Origin: Andalucia godoyi And28
Taxonomy: Eukaryota > Protista > Jakobida
Length of the DNA: 64,000 bases
Reading direction: 5' to 3'
Assembly: GCA_009859145.1 (NCBI GenBank)
Contig: VRVR01000025.1
Span: forward strand, 69,211 to 133,210
The position numbers were made by a program, and so were the translations under genes. Positions 23,896 to 62,306 of this stretch are shown here, one piece after another; position 1 is the stretch's first letter; each line of letters begins with the position of its first letter. Below the pieces are notes generated by a model that ran no database searches, was not told where the DNA came from, and saw nothing but the letters and a program-made list of their open reading frames with translations.

Positions 23896-24349
23896 TTGAA
23901 TAATGACACGTCATTGTCATGCATACGGAAGTATACATAAACAGACACGGTCAATACTGGCCGACACTAGCACCTTTTGTTTCACAGGAATTCGTGCTGA
24001 TGCACGCTCGGCCAAAATTCAGCCGGTGGCACAGGCTCTGCATTTCCGACACTCTTTAACGCAACATCCGTAGCCATCTATTCTATCATTCGTTGGTTTG
24101 GTTTTTTGGTTTCACTTTTTGCAACGTTTGTTCCATAAGGCAACCGAGTATCGCGAGCGGCGGAAGCAAAGTGTTTGCATGTCCCGCGTGCAGCTCGCAG
24201 ATTGACCGAGATTGGGAACGGAGCGCGGAACATCTATCCGAAGAACGCTGTGAGGCGTGTTGGGGCCTATCCCCTTCCCGGCAACGGGATGCAAGACTGA
24301 ATATGCATGTCCGTTCGTAGATATGCATGTTCGGGGTACAACGTAGGCG
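23896..24349 (+). mobile_element. Family-1 non-autonomous Fanzor2/TnpB mini-element, copy A
   Basis: Shares left end (AATGAC..GTCATT) and right end (GTACAACGTAGGCG) with 41945-42508 and 58431-58883. Encodes LQRLFHKATEYR and SGGSKVFACPACSSQIDRDW(+1)NGARNIY. Confidence 0.9.
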
Positions 24350-24369
24350 TCCTGGCCAGTCGTACATCC
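24200..24369 (+). ncRNA. Predicted omegaRNA scaffold plus guide (copy A; 5' limit approximate)
   Basis: GGGG-CCTAT-CCCC, TCCCG-GCAA-CGGGA and a long TTCG-capped stem overlap the TnpB 3' end; variable flank TCCTGGCCAGTCGTACATCC. Expression not shown. Confidence 0.6.
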
Positions 24370-24622
24370 TATTTGAAAAAACCCAAGTTCTCCATCGTCC
24401 GTAGTTCCATGTTTCGCTCTTCTTTTCTGTTTTCCCCAATGTCCAAGCCATTGCACTGAGCCCTGCATCAGTCTTTGATTTCCGTCTTTTCTGTATTGTT
24501 TACTTATTATAATTATAATTATAATGGTTTGTTTTGTTATTACTTTTTTGGTTTTCATCCGTGATCTTTTATAATTCTTTTATTGGCGGTGTTTTTTGAG
24601 AGCTTGTGGATCTTGGGCGAAC

Positions 24623-27600
24623 ATGAAAGTGAAGGCTCTTCAAAATCGAAGGTTTGCGAAAGATCGGAAACAATCGAAGCAAAAGCCAGAGTCTTCCTCT
24701 GAAAGCGAGGAAGTGGACGAGATTTTGGACTCTGATGAATTTTCGTCTTTGGATGAACGTTCCGAGCAAGACAGCCCTATCCACAATGATGATGAAAACG
24801 GTGGATTCGAGAACATAGATGACGATGACGATGACGAAGCGCACGAAGAAGAAGAAGAAGAACAGGAGGAGGAGAAGGAAGAAGAAGAGATTGTGCGACC
24901 ACCACTGAAGCGAGCGCGTCTTGCGTTTGAGATTGAGGCGGAAAATCAGAAATCAGTCAAGGAGCCAAAGCTATCAAAGGAAGCCTCGAAGATGACGGAA
25001 GCGGAAATCCGATCGAAACGATTCAAACTGCAAGCTGATGCGCTGCTTGGGGAAGTCAAACCGTCGAAAGAAGTATTTCAGAATTGCGAGGCCTTTCTGA
25101 GAACACTGCGTGATGCGCTCTTCTCAGTGTCTGCAGCGACGAGCCCGTCACAAAACGCAGTTCTTCTGGAAAATGGACTGGCGGACGTGCTTCACGCAGA
25201 TGAATCAAACGACTGCGAAGCAAGGTTCGTGCCACCTTCGCAGATCCGGATTGTCGGAAGCTTTCTGCTTCGCTGTACGATTCGTCCGCGCCTAAATGTC
25301 GATGTCGCATGCGAAATTCCCTCGGAATGCTTCTTGCAAAAGGACTTTACGCACGGAAGGTATTTCAGGAAACGAGCGGCATGGCTCTTCATGTACGCAA
25401 AGCAGCTTCAGAAGAAATTGAACAAATTGGGTGTCACCATCAAGGTGTCTGATTTCAACGGGGACAAGTTTCGGCCGGTTTTGGAGCTCTCTGCAGCCGA
25501 ACTGATGCCGTTTACTGTTCGCATTTTGCCATGCCCATCAGACACACAGTTCTCGCTCGAGAAACTGTATTCGAGATCGTTGTTTGCAATTGCAGAGGAC
25601 GCGACGTTGGTGCCCCATTTGGCATATCTTCACGATCAGTTTTTGCAGTACGATAATTTGCTGGCGGTCGCATCACTGGTCCGCGTTTGGCTGCACCAGA
25701 GGCCCCTACTGGAAAGGTTCGTGTCACCCTTCATGCTGACTATGTGTATCGCAAAGGAATGCACCACGAATCCGCTGTTGAAACATGCAGACCTGTATCA
25801 TTTCTTCAAGGTATCCATGAAGGCAGTCCAGTCCGCCGCGGCTTCCGGATCTCTGACCGACGTGTCCGGGTCATTTTCGCTATCCCATGCATGTCCCTCG
25901 TGGGTATTGCGACGGCTGGCGTATGAGGCAGGGCTGGCTGTTCAATTTATGGATGCAGAAGACTTCAGCGGACTGTTCTTACAAAAGGTTGATCCCCTCT
26001 TTTCCTTCGATGGGTTCTATGTATTTTCCCGGAAAGTGGGTCAAACCGAACTCGCACAGTTGTGCGAAAAAGTGGAATCGGCAATTTCCGGACGTGTTCG
26101 GTGTGTTTGCCCTGTGCTTGACTCCCTTTCTGGACGTCATGCGCAGTACTCGATGATCGGTTTCTTGTTGACCGGTGATACCAGCGAAGCATACAAGCAA
26201 GTCGTCATGGGACCTGCTGCTGACGGGATTGCCGAGGAGATCGATGCCTTCCGAGGGATCTGGAAAGATAGAGCGGAAGTTCGCCGTTTCAAGGATGGCG
26301 CAATTTGCTGGTCTGCAGTTTTTCCCATTCCGAGCACTAAAAAGATTGTGGGTTCCAAGCGGGCATCGCTCGAAGATGTCACTCTGTGCCGTCGAACGTT
26401 CATCCTGGAGGAAATATTCCAGTTTTTGGTTGGCGATTCGAAGGGGCATATTCTGATGGATCCCATTCTTCCTTCTCTGATGGACGCTGCTGGAGAGGGC
26501 GATGACACTTCGGCGAAGCTCGAGTATGCTTCCGCATACGCCATCCGAGTTGCATTCAGCGAACTACAGTCCATGGTCATTCAGTGTGCATCGCTGCCTC
26601 TGCAAATCATCTCTGTTCATTGTACGGATCCCGCAGCCCGCAACACCTCTTCTCATCTGTCCGCATACACAGATGACAGGCGTGTTGTTCCCGTGGTCGT
26701 CATTCTCGAATCCTCTTCCAGATGGCCGGCAAATGCACAGGCGATTGCGAGGCTGAAGACGGCAATGGCATTTAGAATGGCGCAAGAACTGGAGTCAAAA
26801 TACCACTGCGCTTGTCGTTTGACGGAGCAGTATCTCGATGTGAACCTCCGTCGTGCAGACGCTGACTCCAAAAAGCTGACATTTCGGTTGTTGCTGCGAT
26901 CGGAAAATCCGCTCGAAATCACAACGCTTCCGGTCAAGGATGCGCTTGTTTATGAACGAGAAACAAAGTATGCAGTGCAGCACCACATGTGGAGTCTTGA
27001 TCTTTCCTTGAAGTTTGTGGGAAGGTACGGGGAAGCTTGTCGCTTGCTGGAGCGCTGGCTAGTGTCCCATGGTCTTTCTGGCTATTTCACTCAGGAATGG
27101 ATGGAGCTCATTGTCGCCGCTGTGTTTCATCCGAGACTGTGCTCTCCCTACGGCATCCCACAGTCGTCGTGGATCGCCTTTTTGCGAGCCCTTCGATTGA
27201 TTGGTACCGTGGACTGGAGACGAGAACCGATCGATATTCGTGGAATGTCTGGCGAGGAAGTCCAGAAAGTGTTGGAAAGGGATGCCGTCAAAAAACAGTC
27301 GGATTCTGAGAAGGTTGTCGAAGGTATGGATGGCCCCCAGGAATCGGATGTTTCCGGAAAATCCGTGAAAAGGGGTGGTCGACACACTTTCAAGATATTA
27401 TATGATCTCGATCCAGAATTTGGTCACCGTTGGTCGATTGATGGACCAGAGGAAATGATTGTGGATCGAATGCAGACACTGGCACGCAAATCGCTCGCAA
27501 ATCATGAGCGATGCGTTCTGAAACAGTCTTCTCAGTCTGCGTTTGCCAAGGAGTACGAAGCGGAGGTGATGTTTTCTGCAGAGGACTCTCGTCTGGCAAT

Positions 27601-28072
27601 GGTTGTTCAGGACATGGACATGTTGATACGACGCAGAGTGTTTGCCTCGCGGACGTCTCGGCAACCTTGGTGTCAGTTTATGGGATTGGATACGCTTTAT
27701 GACTGCTATCCGGAAGATGGCTTCCTGTCGCTGCTGCGAAAGCAGTTTGAGAACTACGCCTTTTTCTTTGAGCTAGACAAGAAACACATTGGAGTTGTTT
27801 TCAAGCCGCTTGCATTTCTTCCGACCCAGTTGCGAATTTCCTCTTCATTCTGCGCATTCCCTCTGGATGCCGACTGCGCTGCAGAGGGCCCAATGAAGAG
27901 CACCACAGTGATCCCTAATGTTTTTGAACTTGTGCACGAAATCAAGTCGATTGGCAAGGGTGTTGTGGAAAGCATGGACTTTGTCGTTCGGGGGGACCAG
28001 TGGGAGAACAGATGCAGTCTTGAAGCGCAGCAGGAGGACAGCGACCCGTCCGATGCAGCAAGTGAGCCTTGA
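24623..28072 (+). CDS. NOL6: U3 snoRNA-associated protein 22 / nucleolar protein 6 (Nrap)
   Basis: IVGSFLL...PRLNVDVA, YFRKRA, FRGIWKDRAEVRRFKDGAI and FKIL motifs of the Nrap/Utp22 family. Confidence 0.9.
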   Translation: MKVKALQNRRFAKDRKQSKQKPESSSESEEVDEILDSDEFSSLDERSEQDSPIHNDDENGGFENIDDDDDDEAHEEEEEEQEEEKEEEEIVRPPLKRARLAFEIEAENQKSVKEPKLSKEASKMTEAEIRSKRFKLQADALLGEVKPSKEVFQNCEAFLRTLRDALFSVSAATSPSQNAVLLENGLADVLHADESNDCEARFVPPSQIRIVGSFLLRCTIRPRLNVDVACEIPSECFLQKDFTHGRYFRKRAAWLFMYAKQLQKKLNKLGVTIKVSDFNGDKFRPVLELSAAELMPFTVRILPCPSDTQFSLEKLYSRSLFAIAEDATLVPHLAYLHDQFLQYDNLLAVASLVRVWLHQRPLLERFVSPFMLTMCIAKECTTNPLLKHADLYHFFKVSMKAVQSAAASGSLTDVSGSFSLSHACPSWVLRRLAYEAGLAVQFMDAEDFSGLFLQKVDPLFSFDGFYVFSRKVGQTELAQLCEKVESAISGRVRCVCPVLDSLSGRHAQYSMIGFLLTGDTSEAYKQVVMGPAADGIAEEIDAFRGIWKDRAEVRRFKDGAICWSAVFPIPSTKKIVGSKRASLEDVTLCRRTFILEEIFQFLVGDSKGHILMDPILPSLMDAAGEGDDTSAKLEYASAYAIRVAFSELQSMVIQCASLPLQIISVHCTDPAARNTSSHLSAYTDDRRVVPVVVILESSSRWPANAQAIARLKTAMAFRMAQELESKYHCACRLTEQYLDVNLRRADADSKKLTFRLLLRSENPLEITTLPVKDALVYERETKYAVQHHMWSLDLSLKFVGRYGEACRLLERWLVSHGLSGYFTQEWMELIVAAVFHPRLCSPYGIPQSSWIAFLRALRLIGTVDWRREPIDIRGMSGEEVQKVLERDAVKKQSDSEKVVEGMDGPQESDVSGKSVKRGGRHTFKILYDLDPEFGHRWSIDGPEEMIVDRMQTLARKSLANHERCVLKQSSQSAFAKEYEAEVMFSAEDSRLAMVVQDMDMLIRRRVFASRTSRQPWCQFMGLDTLYDCYPEDGFLSLLRKQFENYAFFFELDKKHIGVVFKPLAFLPTQLRISSSFCAFPLDADCAAEGPMKSTTVIPNVFELVHEIKSIGKGVVESMDFVVRGDQWENRCSLEAQQEDSDPSDAASEP

Positions 28073-28400
28073 CGCCCATCGCACTGCTCGCAAAAACAGC
28101 AAACCACGCACTTGGTGCTATCCATGCAACGAAACTCTTTGCTCTGCTTTCCCCCCACTCCCCCAGAGATTCAGACAATGCTCTTCCGCTTGGCCTTTTT
28201 TCTTCTCGTTCCATTCATGCCAGTCCATCGTCATTCCGATGCCCCTTCTGGAACGGTGCGCAAAACATCGATCTGAAGAACGCTTCAGCGTACTGGGGCC
28301 TGTCCCTGCTTCCTGAATTGAAAATTCGCATTCGGTGTTCAGGTGCAAGACCGACGGCCAGCAACGATTCACCATGTGTAGTGTACAATGTAGACACCCG
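28058..28400 (+). mobile_element. Family-2 non-autonomous TnpB/Fanzor-derived mini-element, copy 2 (overlaps NOL6 stop)
   Basis: 343-bp near-identical inverted copy of 11992-12334 with the WNGAQNIDLKNA motif and conserved right end. Confidence 0.75.
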
Positions 28401-28711
28401 ACGCAGAGTCTGCTGAGTGATATTCTTTTGTGCAACATATACCTTTCTCCATCATGCATTTCCATTTATCTTTTCATTTTCAAATTAGCATTCTACAAAC
28501 AAAATTCACAGGTTGTATTTTATTGTTTTTTAGTTTTTTGATTTTATTTATTAATTTATTTTTTGGCTCAATGTTTTCTTCATGTAAGCATCCGATGACT
28601 ATCCAAAAATCCAAATATACGCGAACGACTATATCAACAAAAACACAAAGAAAAAGAAGAAGAAGAAGAAGAAGGAAAAAAACAAAGATTCTTCAAATTA
28701 CTCTAGCATCA

Positions 28712-30886: not shown

Positions 30887-31355
30887 TCTTCTTCTTTTCT
30901 TCTCTCAAAACAAAACAAAACAAAACAATTATGGAAAAAACACACCACACACCACACGCACAGAGACAGACAGACACACCCGACAGTAAGTACTTGATTA
31001 GCAGACTGTTTTTGTTTTTGTTCTTGTTTTTTCAAGAAAAATGAAAAACCAAAAGAACGAAACCGACTGGTTGAGAAAAACGGATCAGGAAGATGGATTC
31101 TTTCAAAACGGCACTACGGCAAAAATGCATGGTCCAAACAGTTCTCCAATTGGCAATTGTCCGACAAAAGCGACATCCAAATGCCCCATTACTGCCGTTG
31201 TTAAAAAAGGCCGACTACCTACGGCAGGCAAGTGGGAAAATCTGAGAATCTTTGAAAAGCAAAATGCTGAAGAAGAAAGAAAAAGAAACGAGATGGGAAA
31301 GCAAAAGGAGTGAGTACTGAAGAACAAACGGATTTCATTTTTAACATATGGGGTA

Positions 31356-31784
31356 TTACAAGACCTTCTTGGTCAAGAGATAGAGTCTCATATCGGGATC
31401 GATTTTTGCCATGTGTTTAGGGTTCCCCGAAAGCTTGAGCAACAGGCCTCCAAACGACGCAAACACGGCCATCTTGTCTCCTTCTGCGAGGATCTTGTAC
31501 ACTTTTCCGCTCATGACATAGTCGTAGTCGTCTGCGAGCGTTCGGTTCTGTGCTATGTGCGGGTCATACACAAAATCATCGGGGGATCCATCCCGAGCGA
31601 TCGTAGACGCAAGCACGAGCTTCAGCTTCTCGCCCTCGTCAACGGGATAGATGTCCGTTGCAATGTCCAGCTCGAGATCCATCGCGCATTGCTGCGAATG
31701 AACACTGTAGATCCGAGACACTCGCTCGAACTTTTGGTCTCGAGGCCGACTCGAAATCACAAATATATCTTCAAACAACGACAT
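31356..31784 (-). CDS. RPB8: RNA polymerase I/II/III subunit RPABC3
   Basis: LFEDIF...KFERVSRI, LADDYDYVMSGKVY and ASFGGLL motifs. Confidence 0.95.
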   Translation of the reverse strand: MSLFEDIFVISSRPRDQKFERVSRIYSVHSQQCAMDLELDIATDIYPVDEGEKLKLVLASTIARDGSPDDFVYDPHIAQNRTLADDYDYVMSGKVYKILAEGDKMAVFASFGGLLLKLSGNPKHMAKIDPDMRLYLLTKKVL

Positions 31785-32107
31785 GTTTCCGGCACAGACT
31801 CGTACAGGCTCTGTCGCTCAAAACGGAATTCAAGATAAAAATAAAAATAAAACCAGCTATTCAGTAATAATAGCAGCAATAATAATAATAATAGGAATAG
31901 CAGTCATAATAAATCACAAAGCAATAACAATAACGTGTCAGTAATTCGATGGGAATGAGTTGGTGCAGATTGCAGAATAGGGGAAAAGGGCGAAGAGGCG
32001 TGATGACACTACAGCAGATGGCGAATCGTCACTCATACAAAAATAAAACAAAAGCCAAAACAGAAGAAAAGAAGAAAGAAGAAAGAAGAAGAAGAAAGGG
32101 AGAGTGT

Positions 32108-33379: not shown

Positions 33380-33910
33380 CGCTGGTCACAGCCGTTCCGT
33401 TCTTGGCGTTCTTATCGACGTACTGCGCAAAAAGTATCCAAGCCCCCAGTTTTTTTCACACCCGGAAAAGGGAAGAAGAAGAAGAACAGAAAAAAGAATC
33501 GACAAGAAGGAAATTCGAAGAGATCGAAGAAGAAAAGGACCACCCTATATATATATATATATATGTATGTATATATATGTATATATATTCATAAATACAG
33601 TTTTTGGGCTTTTTCAATGTGTAAAATTTCGACGATTCGTATCGCAGGGGAAACTTGAAAAGCTCGATGGACCGCGTGGAAAATGGAAAAGGGATGGGAT
33701 ACGGCAGGTGAGTGAAGAAGGCAATTTTTGGTTATCTCCTCTTCTGGTTGATCTTCTCATTCTTCTGGTGTCTGCTTGGTACTGCTACTACTACTACAGT
33801 GCAGGATGAGAAAGGCGCGGGTTTGTACTATTCCATCCTTTTTATTTTGTAAATATATTATTTTTTTGTGGGTTTTTGGAGCCTGGGAATCTTGGGTTCT
33901 TGTTTCGACA

Positions 33911-36978: not shown

Positions 36979-37075
36979 TGCATCTGCGTTCTCGAGGGAA
37001 GATCTGCCTGCTGCAGATTATGTGCAGCCCCATTCGCTACGCAAGTTCGTTTCGTTTGAATCACATCGCATTTAT

Positions 37076-41540: not shown

Positions 41541-41944
41541 GATCGAGAACCGGCAAATATGGCGATGGTTCTGTTCAAACCCCAAAGACTCTTGTTTCGC
41601 AGCAACCTCAGACTCGGAGTATCTGATGCCACCAGACGGAGAAACATAAAAAAGAAGAAAACACAAAGGGTCAGTATAAAACAGACAAAAACATTGTAAG
41701 CCATACCATTATTCGTCATTCATGAACATCAAAGTAAACTTTAAAAAGAAAAGAAAGAAATCGCAACATACCCTTGGCGCTTCCTAATTACAGACCACAT
41801 TTTCCTACGTGTTCGTATACAAGGCTACAACAGTAACGACGATGATGACGATAATGACGATGACAAAGATTAGATTTCTGATTTTCTGCATAAAAATGCC
41901 CAAAGCCACGCAAACGCCTCTTTGGGACACAACCGCCATTACCG

Positions 41945-42508
41945 TAGAATAATGACCCGTCATTGTCATGCATGCGGAAGAATGCATAATCTGACACGGT
42001 CGACACTGGCCGACACTAGCACGTTTGTTTCACAGGGAATTCGTGCTTACGCACGCTCGGCCAGAATTCAGCCGGTGACACAGGCTCTGCATTTTCGACA
42101 CTCTTTAACGCAGCATCCATAGCCATCTATTCTATCATTCGTTGGTTTGGTTTTTTGGTTTCACTTTTTTATTCAAATATGGGCGTGAGTGCGCTGGGAC
42201 GACGCATTCGCCTACGCCTACGCCGCCCGATACAGGGCCTCCTAGGTCCCGCAGACCTCCTAAGAGACCACGTGTCACTACGCCTGCTGCTAGGGCCGTC
42301 AGCATCAAAATGCACCCTTCTCAGGAACAACGTGTCGCGCTGAGAAAGTGGCTCACAGATTGATCGAGATTGGGAACGGAGCGCAGAACATCTATCTGAA
42401 GATCGCCGTGTGGCGTGTTGGGGGCCGATCCCCTTCCCGGCAACGGGATGCACGATTGAGTATGCATGTCTATTCGTAGATATGCATACTCAGTGTACAA
42501 CGTAGGCG
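41945..42508 (+). mobile_element. Family-1 non-autonomous Fanzor2/TnpB mini-element, copy B
   Basis: Same ends as copies A and C. Retains N-terminal PPKRPRV...RAVSIKMHPSQEQRVALRKW (IS605 OrfB HTH-like) fused by deletion to QIDRDW(+1)NGAQNIYLK. Confidence 0.92.
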
Positions 42509-42528
42509 TAGAAAAAGGTCCGGCGCAA
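42360..42528 (+). ncRNA. Predicted omegaRNA scaffold plus guide (copy B; 5' limit approximate)
   Basis: TCCCG-GCAA-CGGGA and the 16-bp TGAGTATGCATGTCTA-TTCG-TAGATATGCATACTCA stem; flank TAGAAAAAGGTCCGGCGCAA. Confidence 0.6.
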
Positions 42529-44557: not shown

Positions 44558-44929
44558 ATAGCCTCTCAAACTCTCCTTTTTTTTATTTTCCCATTCATCC
44601 TGGGCATAGTCCACTTCCCCGATGGAAGGATCTTCCGGGAAGTGCCCTTGCCAACCGGCGCGCGCAATCCATCGACATAAGAAGAATCTGATACTGCAGG
44701 AATGTCAATAATCACGGGGACATAACTTCCTTTATGGCTGGCCCAAAGACTGCATCGTCGGAAGAAGCACCAGCAGAGGGACCCCAGAAGCAGAAGTAGG
44801 CAACGGGTGCAGGAGACGGGATTGAGAAAAGGAAATTTCAAATAAAAAGAATACAAAACGGAAGAACGGGAACGGCAGAAATCTTGGTCTCTCTGAATTC
44901 AATGTTATGGAAACGCATTTCTCCTTCTT

Positions 44930-44970
44930 CTTTTCTTTTCTTTTCTTTTCTTTTCTTTTCTTTTCTTTTC
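44930..44970. repeat. (CTTTT)n pentanucleotide repeat
   Basis: Read directly. Confidence 0.9.
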
Positions 44971-45065
44971 TTTTTTTGTGCTCAATAACGTTCTTTGTTT
45001 GCCCTGCGAATGTGCTCATGGATCGCGGCCGAAATTCAGGCGGTGGGCTTTGCTAGAAACAAGAA

Positions 45066-47138
45066 ATGAGGCGCATATTCATTAGAATCCATGGGGCTCC
45101 GCAGTCCTCGGTATACTTGATAAAGGATGACGCGACGTGGAGCGACGTGTGCATGGATGTGAGGACTCGTCTCGATGAGTTTGGATTCTCAAACTTGTCT
45201 GTACCGGCTGAAGGTCTTTCTGCACTCTATGCGATGCATGGGCAGTCTGAATCTGTGTTTGCACCTTCGGCAGTCGCTAGCGCCACCGTGAAGGAAGATG
45301 AAATCGTGAAGTTCATGTTCTCTTCCTCACCGACACTGCAATCGCTGGATGCTGCTCGACCGCAAGGTCAGTTGCCCGTACCTCGGTCCCTTGAACCGGA
45401 ATCGCTCCCTTCAGAAAAATCCACGAAACTGTATGTTTGGGCGAATATCGAGAACCTGGTTTCGCAATTGTTGGTTCTGGCCTCGCACATTGAGAATTCA
45501 AGCCATCCTCACTGTCTGCTTCTCATTGTCTGTTCGACTGTCGAGGCGTTTGCACTGTCTCGTGTGTTGATGCGGTTGCAAGTTCGTGCAGCTTCCGTGA
45601 ACACTGTGGCCGAGGTTTCCGATCTGTCCTTTTTGTCGTCGGTTCACCGAGTATTGTGCATCCCTTCTTGCTGGATCTCGTCCGCCGTCAGCGCCCAGTT
45701 CCCTACTGTTGTGTTTCTGTCTCGTGAAATCCGACTGCAGATTTGCGGAAATCCAGATTTTGCAGACATTGAAGAGCGATGCGCGTTGATGCATTTTGAA
45801 TTTTTAGACGAACACTCTAGTGCTTCAAAGCTGGAAACGTTTGCCGCAGGGCGGAGTCCTCTCAGCATCAGCGTTCTCCGAAGAGTGCCATCGCAAGGCA
45901 ATGTGCATGCATGTTTGCTAGCACCATGGCAGGAATCAGTCATTCGAGAAATCACGACCTTCCATTTCAGTCTTTGTGCTTGGTTGACCGAACAGAGTCT
46001 GAGTCTGGACTTGCTTTCCAAGAACTGTGGTGCTCGTCTGTGGGAGGAACTATGTCATCATGCAGAGAAGTGTGCCATTCTGTTCTTTCAACGCCCAGAC
46101 TTCGCGCGTGTGTTTCGAGTACTTCGCATTCTCTCGCACCTGATGCGAATCGTCAATGAATCCAATGCCCTTGTCACTCTCAACTTTTTGGATGCCATGA
46201 AGCGCAAATGCGACTCCGAGTTCCCTTCCGGTACGGACGATGGCGACAAGATATGTCGCTGGCTCTCTTCCGTATTCACGGCTCTTGTCCATGCTCTAGA
46301 ATCCGTTCCTCATTCCCAGCCGCCCAGTCCGCGCTGTGAGCTGCTGGCCAAGTTTGCCGCTGAATACATGAGTTCACACCCCAAGGAGTATGTTCTGTTG
46401 GTGCTGTCGTCGTCTGCTGTTTCCCAGTATCTCTCATTTGCATTCCCGGGTGTTCTGTCGCCCTCCTCCCGTCTCATCCACTTTGTATCCGCGTATCCAA
46501 TCGTTAGCGACGGCAGTCTGACTCGGGAGCAGCTCCAGTGCCACACGATCATTCGCTTCGACTGCTTGGGGCCTGCTTCCGTGCTCGACTCCATCCCGTG
46601 TCTTGATCGCGTATCGGATGCCAAGACTGTCATCCTGGAGTCTCATATCCATGACGTGCACCAACGTGAGGAATCTCTCAAGGCACGGATTCTTCAACAT
46701 ACATCACCAATACCATCGCTGTATGATGCGTCGCTCCTGGTATCGTCTTCTCCGAGTTCCGTCAAACGGCGAAAGCGAGATCTGGAAGATGCGCAGCCGC
46801 CTGCCCCCGCGGCCTCTCTCCAACAGGCCACCCAGGAGCCTTCCGAGCACGCTCTCGCATCCGCGAAAACAAATCTGTACTTGTATCTCAACAAGTACAA
46901 CTTGCCAATGCCCAAGTACGAGGTTGTCGAATCGTTTGGACCCGCACACAAGAAGCGTTTCCGCGTCAGAGTGATGCATGGAGAGCATGATTTCGTGTGC
47001 GAAGGCTCGTCTGTCAAGAACGCAGAGCGCAGAGGCGCGCACAGTCTCCTTGAGGCGTTTTACGGGGCCGCCTCCTCCGCCCCTCTCACTACCCTTTCCG
47101 TCGAACTGAAGCACCAGTACACTGCTCCGCCGTCCTGA
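45066..47138 (+). CDS. dsRNA-binding-domain protein with degenerate Dicer/RIG-I-like helicase region
   Basis: C-terminal dsRBD (AKTNLYLY...PKYEVV..GPAHKKRF....V...GSSVKNAERRGA). Middle segments PRCELLAKF...YVLLVL and CHTIIRFD resemble helicase-2 motifs without catalytic residues. Confidence 0.65.
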   Translation: MRRIFIRIHGAPQSSVYLIKDDATWSDVCMDVRTRLDEFGFSNLSVPAEGLSALYAMHGQSESVFAPSAVASATVKEDEIVKFMFSSSPTLQSLDAARPQGQLPVPRSLEPESLPSEKSTKLYVWANIENLVSQLLVLASHIENSSHPHCLLLIVCSTVEAFALSRVLMRLQVRAASVNTVAEVSDLSFLSSVHRVLCIPSCWISSAVSAQFPTVVFLSREIRLQICGNPDFADIEERCALMHFEFLDEHSSASKLETFAAGRSPLSISVLRRVPSQGNVHACLLAPWQESVIREITTFHFSLCAWLTEQSLSLDLLSKNCGARLWEELCHHAEKCAILFFQRPDFARVFRVLRILSHLMRIVNESNALVTLNFLDAMKRKCDSEFPSGTDDGDKICRWLSSVFTALVHALESVPHSQPPSPRCELLAKFAAEYMSSHPKEYVLLVLSSSAVSQYLSFAFPGVLSPSSRLIHFVSAYPIVSDGSLTREQLQCHTIIRFDCLGPASVLDSIPCLDRVSDAKTVILESHIHDVHQREESLKARILQHTSPIPSLYDASLLVSSSPSSVKRRKRDLEDAQPPAPAASLQQATQEPSEHALASAKTNLYLYLNKYNLPMPKYEVVESFGPAHKKRFRVRVMHGEHDFVCEGSSVKNAERRGAHSLLEAFYGAASSAPLTTLSVELKHQYTAPPS

Positions 47139-47707: not shown

Positions 47708-48347
47708 TTTCCGGGATGCCTCTCTTCCGCAATAAGCAAACAACAACAAACAAAAACTTTAATTATGAAACTTTTTATCCACCCCCAAAAAAAAACCCCC
47801 TTTAAAATAATAAATAATAAAAAGTAAAAAATACAATTGAAGAAAAGCTTTTTTTTAAAAAAAATTCAGTGAATGGAAAGATGCTCTAACAACATGCAGA
47901 TAAGCAGAGACAGAGAGAGAGAAAGAGAGGGCGAGAAAAAATCGTAGATGCGCGCAGACGTCAAGAGAGGCACAATACAAAATGCACAGTGAAATGAGAA
48001 AGGACGGTGGGGGGTTTTCTTACAGCAGTTGACGACGAAAAATTGAAAGGTTTTACGGTATTCACGTTGATGCTCAATCCTTGGTGATTTTCTTTTCTTT
48101 CGTTTTTTTATTTTTTTTATTATGATTTTTTGATTTGCTTTGTGAATCAGATTCTGCTCATCAAGGCTTGTTATTATTATAATTATTTTTCTTGTCTTGT
48201 CGTATTTTATAGTGTGACGAGGAGAAAAGAGGAGGGGTGGAAAAGAAACGAGAAGAAGAAGACAGAAGAACGATTTTTTATTATTTTTTTTTTAATTTAA
48301 AATTTTAAAGAAAGAGGAGGTTGTTCGGATTGTTCAGGTTGGCGGGT

Positions 48348-51300: not shown

Positions 51301-51443
51301 TATATCGTGTGGCGGACCGCTTAGAAGGCCATCTGAAGAAGCACGGGATGCGTGTCTGCATTTTTGGTTCTGCCGAAGGTGCCAAGAAGGCGGAAAGGGA
51401 GGGCTGGACAGTCGAGGATTTGTCGATGAATTCCGAGGTCTGA
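48348..51443 (+). CDS. PITRM1: Presequence protease (M16C; PreP/Cym1) (intron 48678-48746)
   Basis: GIPHILEHTTLCGSKKYPVRDPFF, RSLNTYM|NAWT, LQEGHRLE, KGVVFNEMKG and REQGGAYG motifs. Confidence 0.95.
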
Positions 51444-51757
51444 TGCACGGAGGAAGAGGACCGGTCTAATGTTGATGATGAAGACGACGACGACGACGAT
51501 GGAGAATAAGGTGGAGAAGCGAACAATGTCAGCAATAGCGGAGTGCCGACAGCAATTGATACCCGCAGTTTTGGGACTTTTGCCTGGTTCTTCGGAATCG
51601 GCAAACTCGTGAAAACCCATATTTGTTACCAGCTGCCAGCGAGTCTGGCCAAAACCGACAAAATTGGTGGATAGAACGATATTCAAAACAAAATACAATA
51701 ATAATAATAATCACTGTAATAATAATAATGATAATAATAGGTAAATATAATGCGAGT

Positions 51758-54700
51758 CTAGAGCGGCGGGAACACGGCAGACGCAGTAGAGCCTGCAGGA
51801 GAAAAGCTGGCTTTCGGTGGTTTGCGGCTTGGCGCAAAAGCGGGAACTGGGTTCTTGGCAGAGCGCTTTTTAAACAGCTCCAATCGCTTGGCGGGATCCT
51901 TGAGCTCATCGCGGCGCTGACGCTGCAGCTGCATCTTGTGATACCGCTCATACTTCTTGAGCATGTTTTCCGCCACGCCCGGCTCATGAAAGCCCCATTC
52001 TTCCGAGATCTTCGTGATCTTTTCTTCTTTCTTATGTCGCGGAGACAATATATTGTTGACATTACCAACATCGTCAAGTATTTCGGTGTGAACATCGCTT
52101 GAAGTATCGCTGTGGGATGTATGCAGCCGTCCTGGAAACTCATCATCGTGACCAGAATGAGGGGCTCCGATTTCAAACGACGCAGCGTGATGCATACTTC
52201 GATGCGATGGTGTCATCACGGATCGTGCAGAATCCAAATGCATCGGTTCAAACTCAAATTCCGTATCAAGATTGTCCATGTCCGATTCTGTGGTCAGCAA
52301 ACTGAAAACAGAATCCTTTGGGATGAAGAGGTCAACGTCCACCTCCGGAAACTCGTCGTCATCGTCAATGAACCTTGCACGAGCCATGATTCTTCGGATG
52401 CGGTGCCCGCGAAAGATCTTCTGGATCTGGACGGCGGCAGCACTGCGAAGCACGTGCAATCGTGAAAGGACGGCGGAAACCTCCGGATGCTGCCGGCGAC
52501 AAAGAAATCCACGAATCACCGCCTGGATCCTCACGGCAGCTGCATTCGTCTGTTGCTGAAGAGCAACTCGTTGACGGACCAGAAATCCGCGGACGATGCG
52601 CTGAATGGAGGTGGCAGCCCGTGATCGTGAGGCGTTCTCCCTGGCTCTCACATAAGAAGGATTCCTGCGCATAACGTTGACAGCCAACTTGCGAGCCTCC
52701 AAAGGTTTGTCTGACCACATCTTCAGTTCAGCTTGCCTTTTGCCCAGGAAACGCTGAGTCTCTTCCAAATGGCGAACCCGCATTCTGATTTCTTCTGCTG
52801 CATGTTTCTGCTGCTGTTGAAAGTCCGCAGCAACAGGTGCTGGTCTTGCGCCGGGCAGCCGCTCGGTGCGCTCGCGCCGATGTCGGCTTGTGAGTTCCAA
52901 GCGATCTCTATGCGACATCTTGATGAACTGCGCGAAGCCGTTTGAAAACTGCTGAACCTGCTTCGATGCAGAAGACTGCTCGTGTTCCCTGAAAATGTGC
53001 GCAACAGGGACAAAACGAGAATTACTTTCTGCACATGAATCAAGAAGACGCATCATTGACGAAGTGCGAAGTCGCGAAACAATGCGTCGCCACGCAGCCC
53101 AGCGCTCGCTCCGCTTAACAGCAGCGTCATCAATGTTTGTAATACCGCGAAGGCCACATAAGACTGCAGATCGAAAGAGCGGTCTTTGGCAGACAGGATT
53201 GTCGTGAACATCCAAACGCCTGAGGGTCATGCGGCATGGCAAAATACTCCACAGAAGTGCGGAATAGTCATGCAGCCGGTTAAATGAAACATCGAACCGA
53301 CGGATAATAGGATAAATCGGAGAAAACGAAAACGAGGTCGCTTTCGGGCCGTATTTCAATTCACGAGATGCATTCGAGATCGCATTCTCCGCAAAGTCCA
53401 GCTCTTCGATGAACGGAGCACAGGGAAGATGCGCCAATCCAGAAATGGAGTTGCCATTCAAAAATACTTTCGACAACAAGGAGTTTGTGAATCCACGAAC
53501 ATCGACAGCGGATATTGAATTTCTATACGCAATGAGCGTTTCGAGTAATGAATTCTTGGAAAAAGCAGAAAATTCGAGGCGGTCTAAAGAATTACGGCCC
53601 ACGTCGAGCGAGAACAAAGCAGGGAAGCTCTGGCATGTTTGCAGTGCAGCGGATATCAAGCAGTTTCTGTACAGGGAAAGGACATTCAGCGCAGCGAGCC
53701 CCTTGAGAGATTGGACACTTCGAATCATATTGTTGTTTGCTTGGATCGACCGGATATTGGAGTTTGCATCCAAGAATTCGAGATTCGTCAGTTTGTTCAT
53801 GCTGCACTCGACTAACACGAGACTCTTGCATGGCTCAAACAACTTGGGAGCAAGCCGGTCCACTTGATTATCCCGAAACCGCACTTCCTCCAAAAACGGA
53901 ACGGACTCGATAAACTGCTTTGGGATATCTGTGAGTCTATTCAGATTGAGACTTAGTGAGACTGGTCTCGCATTGCTCAGCGCACTCAGCAGTGACTTTG
54001 ACACATGAATCGAAGCAATGGCTTCGCACGAGAGGTCAATGACCGGATGACTGCCAGCAGGAAGAGACTCGATCTCGGGATGGTGCATCGTGAGCAAATC
54101 ACTATCCAGAGTCTGCGAAGTCTGAAAAGGATTGTGCTGTTCTGGCTGTTGTTGTGGGTCCGACAGCTCCCCATACGGTACATCTTCCGAACCCCGAACA
54201 GTCGCAGATTGACCGGCGCTCGGAGCCGCCTGGGTACCGGTGAACAGTGTGCTCATTGGTACCACCACTGCCGACCCATCGACCACGGTCCGATCACTGG
54301 AAACCCACGCACAAAAACCAGCATACAGCAAGGACGCTGGGGATCGCACGAGCTGCCGAACACATTTTGCATCGGGCCTTACAAACGTCAGTGTCAGTGG
54401 GACAGAATCCTTCATCGCTGCCACCTGAATCTCGGGACGATGCACATTCGGTGAGTGAGCATGGCGCGCAGGCATTGAAAACAAACCAAGAATCCGACTC
54501 CTTTCTTTTGCACGTTCGAGGGCTTCCTTCTTTTGCTTCTCTTCCAGTAATCTCCTGGACTCTTCTTCCTGGCGCCGTTTCTCTTCCTCTGCTCTTTTGC
54601 GCTCTTCTTCTTTCCTCTTGAGTTCGTCGATGCGCAGCTTTTCCAACCGTTCCTGTTCCTTTCGCTGTGCTTCCAACATTTCTGCAACCTTCTTCATCTG

Positions 54701-55597
54701 AATTCTCAAGGATGCACCTCTTTCGTCCTCAAACTTCATTCGAGATCGTTCTCTGTCCAGCCGAGCTGTCTCTGCCTTCCTCTTCTCTCTCATGACTGAT
54801 GCAAACCGATCTTCCGCCCGCATTCGTTCTTCTTCTTCTGCCGCACGAATGGCTTCTCTTCTCTTTTCCGCTGCGATTTTGGACTCCTCTTCCCTTTGCA
54901 GCCTTCTTTCTTCCAACATCCTCATCTTCTCTTCTCTTTGTCTCCTCCCAAGATCCCTCTCTTCTTCTTGTTGCCTGTCTTCCTCCTCTCGCGCCCTTTT
55001 CTCTTCTTCTGCAATTCGCAGCATTTCATCCAAACGTGAAATCCGCTGCATCTCCACCGAATTCGAGGTCGCCGTCAATGGAGCAGACTGAAAAAAAAGA
55101 CCTTTGGACGACATCTCCTCTGGTCTGCACGGCACCGCAGATGACGACGTACCCTGCCCTGTGTCTCCTCCGCCATCGACGGTCTCTGCTTGCAGTTCCG
55201 CATCCAGCTGCTTTTCAGTCGATTCAAGAAGCCGAGACTCTTTGGCCGCAGGTGCTACGCTTATCGATGCGTCTTCCCTGTCATCCCAGTTCTCGTGGTC
55301 GTTGCTGTCGACGTCATTGTCGTTATCATCTCGAAGCAACGCAACGACTTTCCGCGCAGCTTGGTCGCGCTCACAAAGTAAATTTTCAAAGGTTTGAAGC
55401 GTAGACAGGTACTTTTGCTGCGAATCCAATGGTTTGGAAGTCGTGTTGTGAAGCTTCATGATTGAATGGAACTCTGCATCAAAGTCCGCATCGTCCATAT
55501 CAGAAACGGAATCATTGAACTCCGATAGCTCAGACAAGGCCTCCAACTCCCGCTGGATCTCAGCATTAATGTCCTCACTTGCGACCGATTCGCTCAT
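51758..55597 (-). CDS. Leucine-rich repeat and IQ motif protein (LRRIQ1-like)
   Basis: Coiled-coil region, LRR array ending in LDVHDNPVC, then four IQ motifs (AATSIQRIVRGFLVR etc.). Confidence 0.8.
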   Translation of the reverse strand: MSESVASEDINAEIQRELEALSELSEFNDSVSDMDDADFDAEFHSIMKLHNTTSKPLDSQQKYLSTLQTFENLLCERDQAARKVVALLRDDNDNDVDSNDHENWDDREDASISVAPAAKESRLLESTEKQLDAELQAETVDGGGDTGQGTSSSAVPCRPEEMSSKGLFFQSAPLTATSNSVEMQRISRLDEMLRIAEEEKRAREEEDRQQEEERDLGRRQREEKMRMLEERRLQREEESKIAAEKRREAIRAAEEEERMRAEDRFASVMREKRKAETARLDRERSRMKFEDERGASLRIQMKKVAEMLEAQRKEQERLEKLRIDELKRKEEERKRAEEEKRRQEEESRRLLEEKQKKEALERAKERSRILGLFSMPARHAHSPNVHRPEIQVAAMKDSVPLTLTFVRPDAKCVRQLVRSPASLLYAGFCAWVSSDRTVVDGSAVVVPMSTLFTGTQAAPSAGQSATVRGSEDVPYGELSDPQQQPEQHNPFQTSQTLDSDLLTMHHPEIESLPAGSHPVIDLSCEAIASIHVSKSLLSALSNARPVSLSLNLNRLTDIPKQFIESVPFLEEVRFRDNQVDRLAPKLFEPCKSLVLVECSMNKLTNLEFLDANSNIRSIQANNNMIRSVQSLKGLAALNVLSLYRNCLISAALQTCQSFPALFSLDVGRNSLDRLEFSAFSKNSLLETLIAYRNSISAVDVRGFTNSLLSKVFLNGNSISGLAHLPCAPFIEELDFAENAISNASRELKYGPKATSFSFSPIYPIIRRFDVSFNRLHDYSALLWSILPCRMTLRRLDVHDNPVCQRPLFRSAVLCGLRGITNIDDAAVKRSERWAAWRRIVSRLRTSSMMRLLDSCAESNSRFVPVAHIFREHEQSSASKQVQQFSNGFAQFIKMSHRDRLELTSRHRRERTERLPGARPAPVAADFQQQQKHAAEEIRMRVRHLEETQRFLGKRQAELKMWSDKPLEARKLAVNVMRRNPSYVRARENASRSRAATSIQRIVRGFLVRQRVALQQQTNAAAVRIQAVIRGFLCRRQHPEVSAVLSRLHVLRSAAAVQIQKIFRGHRIRRIMARARFIDDDDEFPEVDVDLFIPKDSVFSLLTTESDMDNLDTEFEFEPMHLDSARSVMTPSHRSMHHAASFEIGAPHSGHDDEFPGRLHTSHSDTSSDVHTEILDDVGNVNNILSPRHKKEEKITKISEEWGFHEPGVAENMLKKYERYHKMQLQRQRRDELKDPAKRLELFKKRSAKNPVPAFAPSRKPPKASFSPAGSTASAVFPPL

Positions 55598-56370
55598 CAA
55601 CGCGTCCTTTCTTTCGGTCTTTCGATCTCCGTAATTCTCTCTTTTTCCCCGCTCCCCCTTCGATCTCACACAACTCTCCTCTTTTCCCTGATACCCCCTT
55701 CACCAATCGAATGATCAAAAACAAAACAAAAACAAAAAAAAACAAAAACTAATTAATCACGCAATTCTCGTACAAGCTGCATTATGCTGCTATGATGCAA
55801 AAGGACGCCGCAATAACAAACCATCTGCGGGGGATTTCTGATGATGTTGCATCAAGCATCAAGCGCGCTGACCGTTAAAAAAACTGTTCTCTTGATGCTA
55901 TTTGCGGCGAACCGGCTTCGTGAAACATGTCAACTCGACGTTGCGCGAAAGTACGTGATGTCGCCGTGTCGGACTTCAGAGTCGTCTTTTTTGGCATTGC
56001 AGTCTGCACGCTAGAAGAAACAAAGACAGGATCCTTTTTTCTACTCCAAAAAAGAAAGAAAGAAAGAAAGAAAGAAGGCAGATAATCAAATCATAAATCA
56101 TACTTTTTTTTAGAGGGAGGTGGGGCTTGCTAACTGTTCTTGCAGAGAATCAAATGGTTTCTATCAAGCAGTATGTCTTTGTATATTATTCGTTTCTTTT
56201 TATATAATCAGAAAAACACTTCTTTTTTGCGTGTCATGGTTTTTTTCTTTCTTTGGGGCTGGGGAGAGTGAAGAACGCTGTCCTGTTGTTTGCAGTTTCT
56301 CTGTATCTAATCTCCTTGAACCGCCATTCTGTTCTTAAAAAACAGTACTGTCGAGCCGAGATCTGGAATC

Positions 56371-56760
56371 ATGCACGCCAGAGGGCTGCCATGCACAAGC
56401 ATTATCGAGTTCAAGCATGTTTGCGGAGAGAGAATAAGCGAATCTGATTTCGAGAAGTGCACACATTTGAAGAACGGATCGGGTCATATTTTGGTCAATG
56501 TTCATGTCAACGAGCCCCGATGTCGACTGGTAGAAGCATTCCTTGTGGATGCGCTTTCGAATGAAGTGGTCGAAGCATCCATCACCGGTCGGACAAAGAC
56601 AGAAATGATTCACGAAGGATGTGCGAAATTGAGGATAGGACTGCTCAAGGCGAAGAAAACGTGCGGAGCTTGTCCACTTCGAATCTGCTTCAAAATGATG
56701 GACGCAAACAGCGTTGTACTCAAGTCTGTCTCGTCAAGGTCGTTCTGTCTGCAGAGCTGA
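56371..56760 (+). CDS. Small hypothetical protein (possibly the last exon of a longer gene)
   Basis: 129-aa ORF with a beta-rich, globular-looking pattern; no family assigned. Confidence 0.4.
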   Translation: MHARGLPCTSIIEFKHVCGERISESDFEKCTHLKNGSGHILVNVHVNEPRCRLVEAFLVDALSNEVVEASITGRTKTEMIHEGCAKLRIGLLKAKKTCGACPLRICFKMMDANSVVLKSVSSRSFCLQS

Positions 56761-56933
56761 CACCGGACAAAAGTGCGAAGCGTGCTGCTGCTTTATTTTC
56801 ATTTTATTTATGCAAGGGGCTGGTGTACACAGTCGCGGAGTTCTCTACAACTAAATGGTAACTTACAGATAATGTTCTTTTTTTTAATTTAAATTATTTC
56901 ATTGCACGCAGAAAAAAAAAGGTCAAAAGATAT

Positions 56934-58148
56934 TCAGTGGTTGCAAATACGGGATGTCGTGTTGGAAACAGAGCCGTCGTTGGTGAAGCGCAGGATCGTG
57001 CCGAGATTGCCACCGACTAGGAGTCCAGTAGGGACCGCCAAAAGCGCACTTTCCTGACCAGTGATGTGGCATTCTCTGATCCCTGGCGTGCAGGGGAGAT
57101 CAAAATCCCGAACGGCCTGCCAAGAGAATCCTCGATCTCTGGTAATCCATGCAGTATTGGTCTCAACAGTCACGTTTGTCATGTTCATGTTTGCCGAGAC
57201 TGCCCAACCCAGTCCGGACGTCTCATCAAACGACATATCGATTACCATGAAGTTCATATTGCGCTGGCTCGTGAACGCTGCAGGAGTAACATCTTTGAAA
57301 GATCGACCCATGTCGGCGGACAGTAGTAGCCGTGACGAACAATGCGGCTCGGAGAGCAGGCACGTGGAAATTACGGAAATGTCCGAGTGTGCGGGATCTT
57401 TGAACAGCGAAAGGGAAGAGATGGGGCAGACAATCGTGGGTGTTGCTTGCGGAGAGCAAGTTGCAAAGGCCTTTCCAAGTTTGAGAGTACGGAAAATGAG
57501 TCCAGTCGAAGAAGTAACGAGCTGTGCGTTGGAGTGTGCTGAAAACGATGATCTCCAATCGGATGCGATTCCGTACAGCAAATCTGCAGATTTCGAGTAT
57601 GAAAATGAGTCCAGCTCAAGAGGAAACTCAAGCCAAAGCCGCGGAAAGAACGCAAGTTTTTCTCGCGATCCCGACAAGACGACGTACGTCATATCATCCA
57701 TCAAGCGGACCACCACAATAAATGACTTGAAAACAGTTCCAGAAACCGTGTATGAAGATCCGTTGGGAGGAAACGAGTGAATGGTTCGAAGCGAACACCC
57801 GAGACATTTAGAAGTGAAAATGCTGGATTTGGAGAATAGCAAATAGTCTGCATTCTCCTGGATTTCCACAATGCTCACGATGTCTGCTTCCTGGTTTTCA
57901 AAGGCGTCCCAATTCGCCCCACCGTCGCTGGAACGCAGAGACTGTCTCGACGGAGCGCCAAAAAATGCCACGAGGCTTGATCCTCGCAACAATGCATCCT
58001 GAGGTTCGAGAGAATCAATCCGCGAAACAACCGTGCAAGAATCGGAGGAAAACGACCGCGACAACGACGATGTGACGACGACGATCTGCAAAAAAGAAAA
58101 CAGCCCGCATACAACGATCGTCGACAACGGGAATAGATGGATCCTCAT
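56934..58148 (-). CDS. Secreted protein with Asp-box (BNR) repeats
   Basis: Hydrophobic N-terminus; SADMGRSF and TRDRGFSW Asp-box motifs. Confidence 0.65.
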   Translation of the reverse strand: MRIHLFPLSTIVVCGLFSFLQIVVVTSSLSRSFSSDSCTVVSRIDSLEPQDALLRGSSLVAFFGAPSRQSLRSSDGGANWDAFENQEADIVSIVEIQENADYLLFSKSSIFTSKCLGCSLRTIHSFPPNGSSYTVSGTVFKSFIVVVRLMDDMTYVVLSGSREKLAFFPRLWLEFPLELDSFSYSKSADLLYGIASDWRSSFSAHSNAQLVTSSTGLIFRTLKLGKAFATCSPQATPTIVCPISSLSLFKDPAHSDISVISTCLLSEPHCSSRLLLSADMGRSFKDVTPAAFTSQRNMNFMVIDMSFDETSGLGWAVSANMNMTNVTVETNTAWITRDRGFSWQAVRDFDLPCTPGIRECHITGQESALLAVPTGLLVGGNLGTILRFTNDGSVSNTTSRICNH

Positions 58149-58410
58149 CCAGTGTCTTGCTCGTCGTTACTTGCTAGCACTGTTCGTTGCCACTTGCCCG
58201 TTCCAGTTGCCAATCGCCCTGCTTTGATCGCCCTTCTCAAGCTCAGAGGATCGGAAGCTGACAACAGCGACCTCGATAACGTAGCGGGAGCGCTCCTCAA
58301 TAAATCTCCGAAATCGGGGGGTTCGAGAACAGGGAAAAAAGGCTGCAGCATGACTTGATTCAACAGCACCCCGCCAAACAAAAAAACTGAGGCAGACAAG
58401 AAAGGGATTA

Positions 58411-58580
58411 AAAAAAGCTGGAGCAAAGAGCGCCTACATTATACACTGAGTATGCATATCTACGGATAGACATGCATACTCAATCGTGCATCCCGTTGCC
58501 GGGAAGGGGATAGGCCCCCAACACGCCTCACGGCGCTCTTCAGATAAATGCTCCGCGCTCCGTTCCCAATCTCGATCAAT
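58411..58580 (-). ncRNA. Predicted omegaRNA scaffold plus guide (copy C; 5' limit approximate)
   Basis: Same hairpins as copy B (loop TCCG); flank CTCTTTGCTCCAGCTTTTTT. Confidence 0.6.
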
Positions 58581-58883
58581 CTGCGAGCCACCTTCTCAGC
58601 GCGACACGTTGTTCCTGAGAAGGGTGCATTTTTTTGATGCTGACGGCCCTAGCAGCAGGCGTAGTGACACGTGGTCTTTTAGGAGGTCTGCGGGATAGAT
58701 GGCTATGGATGCTGCGTTAAAGAGTGTCGAAAATGCAGAGCCTGTGTCACCGGCTGAATTCTGGCCGAGCGTGCGTAAGCACGAATTCCTGTGAAACAAA
58801 CGTGCTAGTGTCGGCCAGTGTCGACCGCCTCTGTTTATGCATACTTCCTTCCGTATGCATGACAATGACGGGTCATTGCCCAT
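58431..58883 (-). mobile_element. Family-1 non-autonomous Fanzor2/TnpB mini-element, copy C
   Basis: Reverse complement matches copy B, minus B 42131-42247; right end GTGTATAATGTAGGCG; CCG outside the left end at 58884-58886. Confidence 0.92.
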
Positions 58884-62285: not shown

Positions 62286-62306
62286 TTTTAATATTACCAT
62301 ATTTTT

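Follow-up and report, generated by a model that had tools for sequence, protein, structure and literature searches.

Mini-elements in the jakobid Andalucia godoyi are probably protein-less, non-autonomous IS607-type descendants of Fanzor2 transposons with omegaRNA-like right ends

Mini-elements in the A. godoyi window

The stretch of DNA analysed here, referred to below as the window, comprises 64,000 nt of nuclear DNA from the jakobid Andalucia godoyi (scaffold VRVR01000025.1), a protist with a compact, intron-poor nuclear genome (VRVR) of ~20 Mb (PMC7050145). ORF 45066-47138 of the window matches without difference a gene of this scaffold in assembly GCA_009859145.1. Scattered through it are short elements that contain scraps of a TnpB/Fanzor-like nuclease gene and that terminate in a right end resembling the guide RNA (omegaRNA) region of TnpB and Fanzor transposons. 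An earlier note on this DNA had described three such copies, A, B and C, with common ends and unrelated flanks, and both alignment and self-BLAST recover them at the same places; the amendment needed concerns their left starts, which had been set 3 nt too far in, as the similarity already begins at a CCG triplet (positions 23893, 41942 and 58886).

Copy A, 23893-24349, forward strand: family 1 mini-element, left end at 23893-24120
Copy B, 41942-42508, forward strand: family 1 mini-element, left end at 41942-42169
Copy C, 58431-58886, reverse strand: family 1 mini-element

The regions common to the three copies, 88-94% identical, span 186-225 nt at the left end and 158 nt at the right. Copies A and B are 92% identical over 224 nt at the left end and 88.6% identical over 158 nt at the right end, while the corresponding comparison of B and C gave 94% over 184 nt at the left end and 94.3% over 265 nt. 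At both sides of each copy the similarity breaks off sharply and the flanks are unrelated. The terminus is GTAYAAYGTAGGCG in 3/3 copies, and the motif GTGTAMAAYGTAGRC occurs seven times in the window at two mismatches or fewer, against a chance expectation of 0.26. A match at 33619 is probably a chance one. With respect to the host genes, A, B and C are located within divergent promoter regions and two further copies, D and E (see below), in 3′ regions.

Coding sequence is present in these copies as scraps. Copy A contains LQRLFHKATEYR (24119-24154), GGSKVFACPACSSQIDRDW (24159-24215) and NGARNIY...GNGMQD followed by a stop (24217-24300), and its right end closes with ...GGGTACAACGTAGGCG. Copy B has an N-terminal remnant, consisting of PPKRPRV (42256-42276), which resembles a nuclear localisation signal (NLS), and RAVSIKMHPSQEQRVALRKW (42292-42351), and a deletion junction at ~42351 fuses this remnant straight to the RuvC-III region. 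This internal deletion is common to B and C, N-terminal RKWL being joined to QIDRDW via GCTC microhomology, and C presents an extra deletion of 116 nt after left-end position 186. In both B and C the NLS-like PPKRPRV, judged by eye, lies upstream of the helix-turn-helix (HTH) scrap. The junctions of A are unlike those of B and C, and A still has the pre-RuvC-II helix, together with half the Zn ribbon. Copies A to E have all lost RuvC-I and RuvC-II. A +1 frameshift comes after RuvC-III (DRD) in A, B and C, whose sequence GATTGGGAACGG has one G more than the GATTGGAACGG of relatives, so that NGARNIY and IDRDW lie in different frames. The peptide scraps quoted in the earlier note are present as given, with the reservation that its reading of IDRDW together with NGARNIY requires a 1-nt frame correction. 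The copies are remnants rather than genes, with no full RuvC triad (D...E...D) in one frame; the complete triad is present in the relatives P0003, P0005 and P0006 described below.

Relationship of the coding scraps to TnpB and Fanzor2

The stitched scraps of A and B match PF07282 (Cas12f1-like TNB, formerly OrfB_Zn_ribbon) at 28.6 bits (E = 1.6e-6, cut-off 26.3), and the scraps are 60-80% identical to the C-termini of the relatives P0001 and P0003 (tblastn), both of which identify them as TnpB/Fanzor fragments. A protein search with the scraps returned two matches. The first, P0001, is a near-full TnpB encoded on a 1286-nt Logan contig (L002) and is 80% identical to the scraps. The second, ANDGO_01483 (P0002, EukProt), is an 82-aa A. 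godoyi 'hypothetical protein' composed of the HTH scrap, the RuvC-II/Zn-ribbon scrap and a frameshifted RuvC-III; it represents a further mini-copy whose deletion is a different one again and which carries the extra G of A, B and C, and the gene model is most likely an annotation artefact in which a transposon remnant was translated. A hybrid 'frame-corrected' ANDGO_01483 peptide was disregarded, part of it having been borrowed from copy A.

A protein search with P0001 provided 825 relatives, including a match named 'transposase R104'. The closest full-length relative, P0003 (437 aa), contains PF12323 and PF07282, and mimivirus TnpB-like L79 is the solved structure that it matches best (E = 3.6e-26). 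Relatives at 39-40% identity are encoded on giant-virus contigs (77 loci), and DPG at RuvC-I is invariant in the protein alignment of the relatives. The structure match, the identities and the DPG motif place the family by its sequence with Fanzor2 and giant-virus TnpBs rather than with Fanzor1. The P0003 frame is open for 135 codons upstream of the called start (positions 1-405 of its contig, L003), and this upstream part is S/T-rich with RKRPP and KKRPPRV motifs recognised by eye; the actual protein probably carries, as does the Naegleria lovaniensis Fanzor2 (NlovFz2), a long and disordered N-terminal extension containing an NLS.

Autonomous relatives and element junctions

The architecture of potential parents was examined in three environmental contigs, none of which is known to come from A. 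godoyi. In L003 (JGI 3300042934), the intact P0003 gene is followed by ...GTAAAATGTAGGCG, with ...GGGGCCTACCCCCTTCC...CAGTGTAAAATGTAGGCG downstream of the gene, and the right-end layout is the same as in A, B and C. L004 (Logan SRR24358103; 2029 nt) encodes a resolvase-domain TnpA (PF00239) and an overlapping TnpB, P0005, and the right end ...GCGTACAACCCAGGCG falls exactly at the contig end. L086 encodes the C-terminal part of a TnpA and the TnpB P0006, and then reads ...CAAATGTAGGCG. The combination of TnpA, TnpB and right end in these relatives implies that the autonomous form is, as far as sequence allows, an IS607-type element of ~2 kb, and the serine-recombinase TnpA found beside TnpB and the same right end in L004 and L086 agrees with the earlier description of the elements as IS607-like.

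L004 stops exactly at the right-end boundary (...CCCAGGCG) and starts 41 nt upstream of the TnpA start codon. As such ends would be expected of a multi-copy element assembled as a repeat-bounded contig, its 2029 bp probably represent an entire autonomous IS607/Fanzor2-like element. A tblastn search with the L004 TnpA detected no TnpA remnant in the window. The right-end DNA pattern gave 0 matches in IMG/VR and four in JGI metagenome contigs; the latter were all rejected as chance matches in bacterial coding DNA, and the search did not recover L003's own contig, which shows this collection to have gaps for such a purpose.

CCG is present at the left junction of 5/5 clear copies (A to E), and CG forms the last two bases of the right end, again in 5/5, with no terminal inverted repeat (TIR) or target-site duplication in the flanks and ends of A to E. 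The presence of CG at both junctions would fit the dinucleotide crossover of a serine recombinase, and the five junctions suggest CCG as a candidate target-adjacent motif (TAM) and CG as the putative crossover dinucleotide. The filled sites of A, B and C read GCG and then the right flank; without the insertion, CCG would stand before that flank. Variable left stretches were observed at 23893-23907, 41942-41956, 58872-58886, 12334-12350 and 28040-28058 in copies that are otherwise 92-100% identical, the variable sequences being TTGAAT, TAGAAT and ATGGGC, and GGACAG and TCCGATGCA.

The omegaRNA-like scaffold

A scaffold of ~137 nt with four hairpins and a pseudoknot was modelled in the right ends of A, B, C, L003, L004 and L086, and in part in D, E and F. 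In the window its complete form is found at the following positions, with scores from R1, a covariance model of the right end.

Copy A scaffold, 24214-24349, forward strand: R1 144 bits; putative guide 24350-24369, TCCTGGCCAGTCGTACATCC
Copy B scaffold, 42372-42508, forward strand: R1 147 bits; putative guide 42509-42528, TAGAAAAAGGTCCGGCGCAA
Copy C scaffold, 58431-58567, reverse strand: putative guide 58411-58430

The hairpins are, in order, ACGC...GCGU, GGGG-CCUAU-CCCC, a third of variable length and a long terminal one, after which comes AGUGUACAAYGUAGGCG. The third hairpin is short with a GNRA cap in A, B, C and L004, and L003, L086 and D have a long version of it. The pseudoknot is formed by the loop of hairpin 2 (GGGG-CCUAU-CCCC) with the GUAGG just inside the right end, and it covaries, CCUAY/GUAGG being replaced by CCUGG/CCAGG in L004. 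In both the terminal hairpin and the pseudoknot, the sequence is wholly changed between families and the pairing is kept. Standard pairs occupy 90% of cells, compared with 75-79% for shuffled partners and 33-48% for slid partners, and 19-22 pairs are changed on both sides, compared with 8-10 for shuffled partners; these figures are generous and somewhat inflated, since the rows, only 8 of them distinct, were aligned to fit the model. Against shuffled sequence, the fold has a z value of -2.6 for B and -4.8 for L003. In A, B and C the predicted fold of the sense strand is more stable than that of the antisense strand by 6-15 kcal/mol (copy A, -49.9 vs -37.2 kcal/mol), as would suit an RNA with the same orientation as the Fanzor gene.

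As modelled, the right end forms an omegaRNA-like scaffold that overlaps the 3′ end of the open reading frame (ORF) and is conserved with covariation. Every deletion variant retains at least 158 nt of the right end with the whole scaffold included, and the suggestion that an omegaRNA had been retained there is strengthened by this modelled, covarying structure. The Rfam scan of the window yielded no family at the gathering score, indicating only that no curated model covers the scaffold, and the giant-virus relatives (77 loci) carry neither the right-end motif nor the scaffold and were of no use for covariation. A long-range AACAU/AYGU pairing proposed by RNAalifold was set aside because its 5′ partner is fixed by NI codons and the better-supported pseudoknot competes for its 3′ partner.

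Other remnants in the window

Four more remnants were recognised in addition to A, B and C.

Copy D, 11992-12333, reverse strand: family 2; R1 covariance model 89.7 bits
Copy E, 28058-28400, forward strand: family 2; 97-100% identical to D
Remnant F, 21054-21174, reverse strand: third subfamily, truncated; R1 70 bits
Remnant H, ~23290-23420, forward strand: degenerate Zn-ribbon/RuvC-III coding remnant

The seven remnants represent at least four subfamilies (A, B and C; D and E; F; H), and the previous estimate of seven or more was about right, comprising the five clear copies A-E, the truncated F and the degenerate H; R1 detects A to F and nothing more in the window. D and E keep FWNGAQNIDLKNA and finish in GTGTACAATGTAGACACCCG, and the left part of D is unrelated to the family 1 left end. 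Remnant F retains RNIYLRNVSHAEGRAG (RNIYLRN...), the terminal hairpin and the end GATAGTGTACAATGTAGGTG, its terminus being GTGTACAATGTAGGTG, and hairpins 2 and 3 are gone. Remnant H, which has no recognisable right end, contains the scraps ...CGKLTKLSGQKV and CKHCGFDMDRAWLGSRNI; its match to P0003 has E = 0.19 (tblastn), and its stitched peptide scores 18.8 bits against PF07282 (E = 0.0018), below the cut-off.

As an inverted pair with their left-end sides inward, D and E flank a 15.7-kb segment that contains genes. Between them, identity is 100% over the 204 nt closest to the right end and 97% over the remaining 143 nt, a pattern that could reflect recent copying, gene conversion or inversion between both copies. 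Copy D lies 16 nt beyond the stop of ORF 10258-11976. The host ORF 24596-28072 runs 15 nt into element E, which supplies its stop codon (TGA, 28070-28072), and the insertion therefore altered or replaced the C-terminus of the host protein.

Origin of the copies and the guide-library question

Our preferred interpretation, to which we assign a probability of about 0.78, is that A-F and H are non-autonomous, internally deleted IS607-type descendants of Fanzor2-encoding parents that were spread in trans and correspond to 'ghost loci'. Apart from a left end and a handful of coding scraps that are out of frame, all that the mini-copies keep is the final ~158 nt, with the complete omegaRNA-like scaffold; they would have been moved in trans by a serine-recombinase TnpA crossing over at the CG within CCG sites. 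The common frameshift of A, B and C implies that family 1 multiplied after its own nuclease gene broke, which is when the spread of the short elements would have occurred. That the short forms were copied after their deletions follows from the junction common to B and C, the insertion common to A, B and C and the boundaries common to D and E; the single deletion junction in B and C and the single frameshift in A, B and C likewise uphold the earlier proposal that the copies are non-autonomous. If a copy were transcribed through its right end in the presence of an intact Fanzor2, it would yield an omegaRNA with its own right flank as the guide, and this omegaRNA would direct cutting of the copy's own empty (excised) site next to the CCG TAM and not of other loci. 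We lean towards the copies being relics rather than still in use.

Several observations count against this interpretation. No intact A. godoyi Fanzor2 or TnpA was found in the window or in searches of the protein collection, including one with a six-frame translation of copy B, which had no match. The published A. godoyi assembly omits subtelomeric scaffolds consisting mainly of transposon/viral-like sequence (PMC7050145), and the absence of Fanzor2 and TnpA from the genome is therefore not shown. With respect to the scaffold, copy B has a mismatch within the pseudoknot, D and E are without the long terminal hairpin and fold better in the antisense direction, and substitutions among A, B and C affect 11/76 paired columns vs 10/61 unpaired ones, with 4/10 changed pairs broken; in addition, the right end is conserved no better than the left end. 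With respect to the junctions, D and E end in CCCG, which is itself TAM-like, and close copies differ in the 6-9 nt that separate CCG from the conserved body of the left end, which makes the crossover site uncertain and leaves a margin of 6-12 nt on the exact left boundary.

The most substantial alternative, which we nevertheless consider unlikely, is an active genome-wide set of guide-RNA genes whose omegaRNAs are loaded by an intact Fanzor2 encoded elsewhere and used to cut many sites. It would account for the retention of at least 158 nt of right end, covering the ~137-nt scaffold, by independent deletion variants, for the intact and better-folding sense-strand scaffold of A, B and C, and for the changes between A and B/C, of which one is fully compensatory and five are wobble-preserving. 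Ghost omegaRNAs are also known to function in trans with SpuFz1 (PMC10432273), and the nuclease gene could hide in the unassembled subtelomeric transposon/viral-like DNA. However, neither the protein-collection searches nor the six-frame search found an intact nuclease, and the nuclease 'supplied in trans' of the earlier note has no counterpart in the window or among the A. godoyi entries of the protein collection. The ORF of the family was dead before amplification, and the scaffold is without excess constraint when A, B and C are compared. Of the other remnants, D and E are atypical, and F and H have decayed. The 12-nt guide seeds match, within the window, only the flank of their own copy. 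The view that each copy programmes a different target thus holds in that each guide is the copy's own right flank, but this is the ordinary homing logic of TnpB and not a library directed against other loci. A more elaborate form of the same idea, in which an intact Fanzor2, perhaps located in the unassembled subtelomeric DNA, loads omegaRNAs from hundreds of copies and so sustains a homing-maintained, guide-only network with a CCG TAM matched to the CG crossover, is more doubtful again.

Assignment of the elements to another transposon class, either IS200/IS605-type elements with a Y1 (HUH) TnpA acting on subterminal hairpins or TIR transposons with a captured Fanzor2, appears very improbable. 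Hairpins built on ATGCAT motifs are indeed present at both ends of A, B and C, and Fanzor2 genes captured by TIR transposons exist in molluscs and Chloropicon, but both relatives that reach the upstream gene (L004 and L086) encode a serine recombinase, and neither a TIR nor a target-site duplication is visible at A to E. Moreover, the terminal hairpin of L004 has a different sequence and is not repeated at the L004 left end, and IS200/IS605 elements are unreported in eukaryotes (Yoon et al. 2023, 10.1101/2023.08.09.552727).

Decay in situ of full-length insertions, the short forms never having moved, is scarcely credible: A does have other deletions than B/C, and erosion is evident in F and H, but B and C present the same junction at different loci, in opposite orientation and with no common flanks, A, B and C carry the same 1-nt insertion, and D and E have both boundaries in common at 97-100% identity. 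Just as little can be said for the copies having been taken over by the host as promoter, untranslated-region or structured-RNA elements unrelated to Fanzor, as their positions (A, B and C in divergent promoters; D and E in 3′ regions, E giving a host stop codon) say little in a compact genome where any tolerated insertion is intergenic, and no sign of constraint was seen.

Comparison with known systems and significance

Protein-less Fanzor copies with an omegaRNA are already known as 'ghost loci': Saito et al. 2023 described 134 such loci in S. punctatus, with ends and omegaRNA and no Fanzor ORF, showed that ghost scaffolds work with SpuFz1, and put forward the idea that a Fanzor supplied in trans gains a broader set of guides from them (PMC10432273). 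Judged by their sequence features, copies A, B and C conform to this description, being dispersed, with both ends and a putative omegaRNA region present and the nuclease ORF absent, and as in S. punctatus the guide would be drawn from each locus's own right flank. In contrast, the S. punctatus ghosts derive from a Fanzor1 element characterised by inverted repeats of 30 nt together with a CA motif, whereas the elements studied here have IS607-like ends, no inverted repeats and CG/CCG junctions; they are also visible deletion derivatives with coding scraps, they reside in a jakobid host, and no partner nuclease was found for them.

Fanzor2 has been reported within IS607-type elements without inverted repeats or duplications (Bao & Jurka 2013, PMC3627910), and the TnpB of the IS607 element ISXfa1 has been characterised together with its right-end RNA (reRNA), which has a 144-nt scaffold and a 17-nt guide (Yoon et al. 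2023, 10.1101/2023.08.09.552727). The ISXfa1 TAM is GGG and its right end CGG, a mismatch that spares the intact element, and a pseudoknot adjoining the guide is known for TnpB reRNAs (10.1101/2023.08.09.552727). The A. godoyi elements resemble ISXfa1 and IS607 in having relatives with a serine-recombinase TnpA and TnpB, in the lack of inverted repeats and target duplications, in a scaffold of ~140 nt extending from an overlap with the ORF 3′ end to the right end, with a pseudoknot next to the guide, and in a left TAM-like triplet that is one base off the right-end triplet (CCG/GCG here, GGG/CGG in ISXfa1). They differ from it in that the window contains only protein-less derivatives, in the putative crossover dinucleotide (CG, not GG) and in that the TAM is deduced from five junctions. 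In bacteria, non-autonomous IS200/IS605 derivatives resembling palindrome-associated transposable elements (PATEs) or miniature inverted-repeat transposable elements (MITEs) have reportedly been described by Meers et al. in 2023. Like PATEs, the present copies are short derivatives that keep the transposon ends only and depend on the proteins of autonomous copies, whereas PATEs are single-strand elements with a Y1 transposase and hairpin ends, and the relatives here have a serine recombinase and the host is a eukaryote.

The measured TAM of NlovFz2 is 5′-CCG (Saito et al. 2023, PMC10432273). NlovFz2 is likewise a discobid Fanzor2 system, its TAM corresponds to the CCG at 5/5 left junctions, and a putative N-terminal disordered or NLS-like extension would be a further point of likeness; NlovFz2 has no reported transposase association, and the likeness lies in TAM and description. 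A literature search found no paper linking A. godoyi or jakobids with Fanzor, and what is modestly new here is the host lineage, the deletion series with coding scraps, and the CG/CCG junctions with a covarying pseudoknot.

If the copies were active, A. godoyi would offer a small culturable eukaryote in which native Fanzor2 homing and guide-only ghosts could be followed; to our knowledge, no Fanzor2 has yet been studied this way in its native setting. Even as relics, they document IS607/Fanzor2 activity in jakobids, mark the smallest retained right end (158 nt) through their deletion series, provide a covariation-supported omegaRNA model with a pseudoknot for the clade, and point to CCG and CG as a TAM and a crossover dinucleotide open to direct test. 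For annotation, at least one gene model (ANDGO_01483) represents a translated transposon remnant.

Simple repeats in the window

Approximately five tandem copies of an ~11-nt unit (TTTCGTCACGC / CTTTCCGTCAC) are located at 23030-23100, in intergenic DNA upstream of remnant H and copy A, and the array closes with TGACGTCA, a palindrome resembling a cyclic-AMP response element (CRE). Long intergenic microsatellites of the types (TG)n, (TC)n, (CA)n, (TA)n and (TTTTC)n were observed at 1-84, 17555-17660, 18070-18140, 33545-33590, 44925-44975 and 62238-62290, and are ordinary eukaryotic simple repeats.

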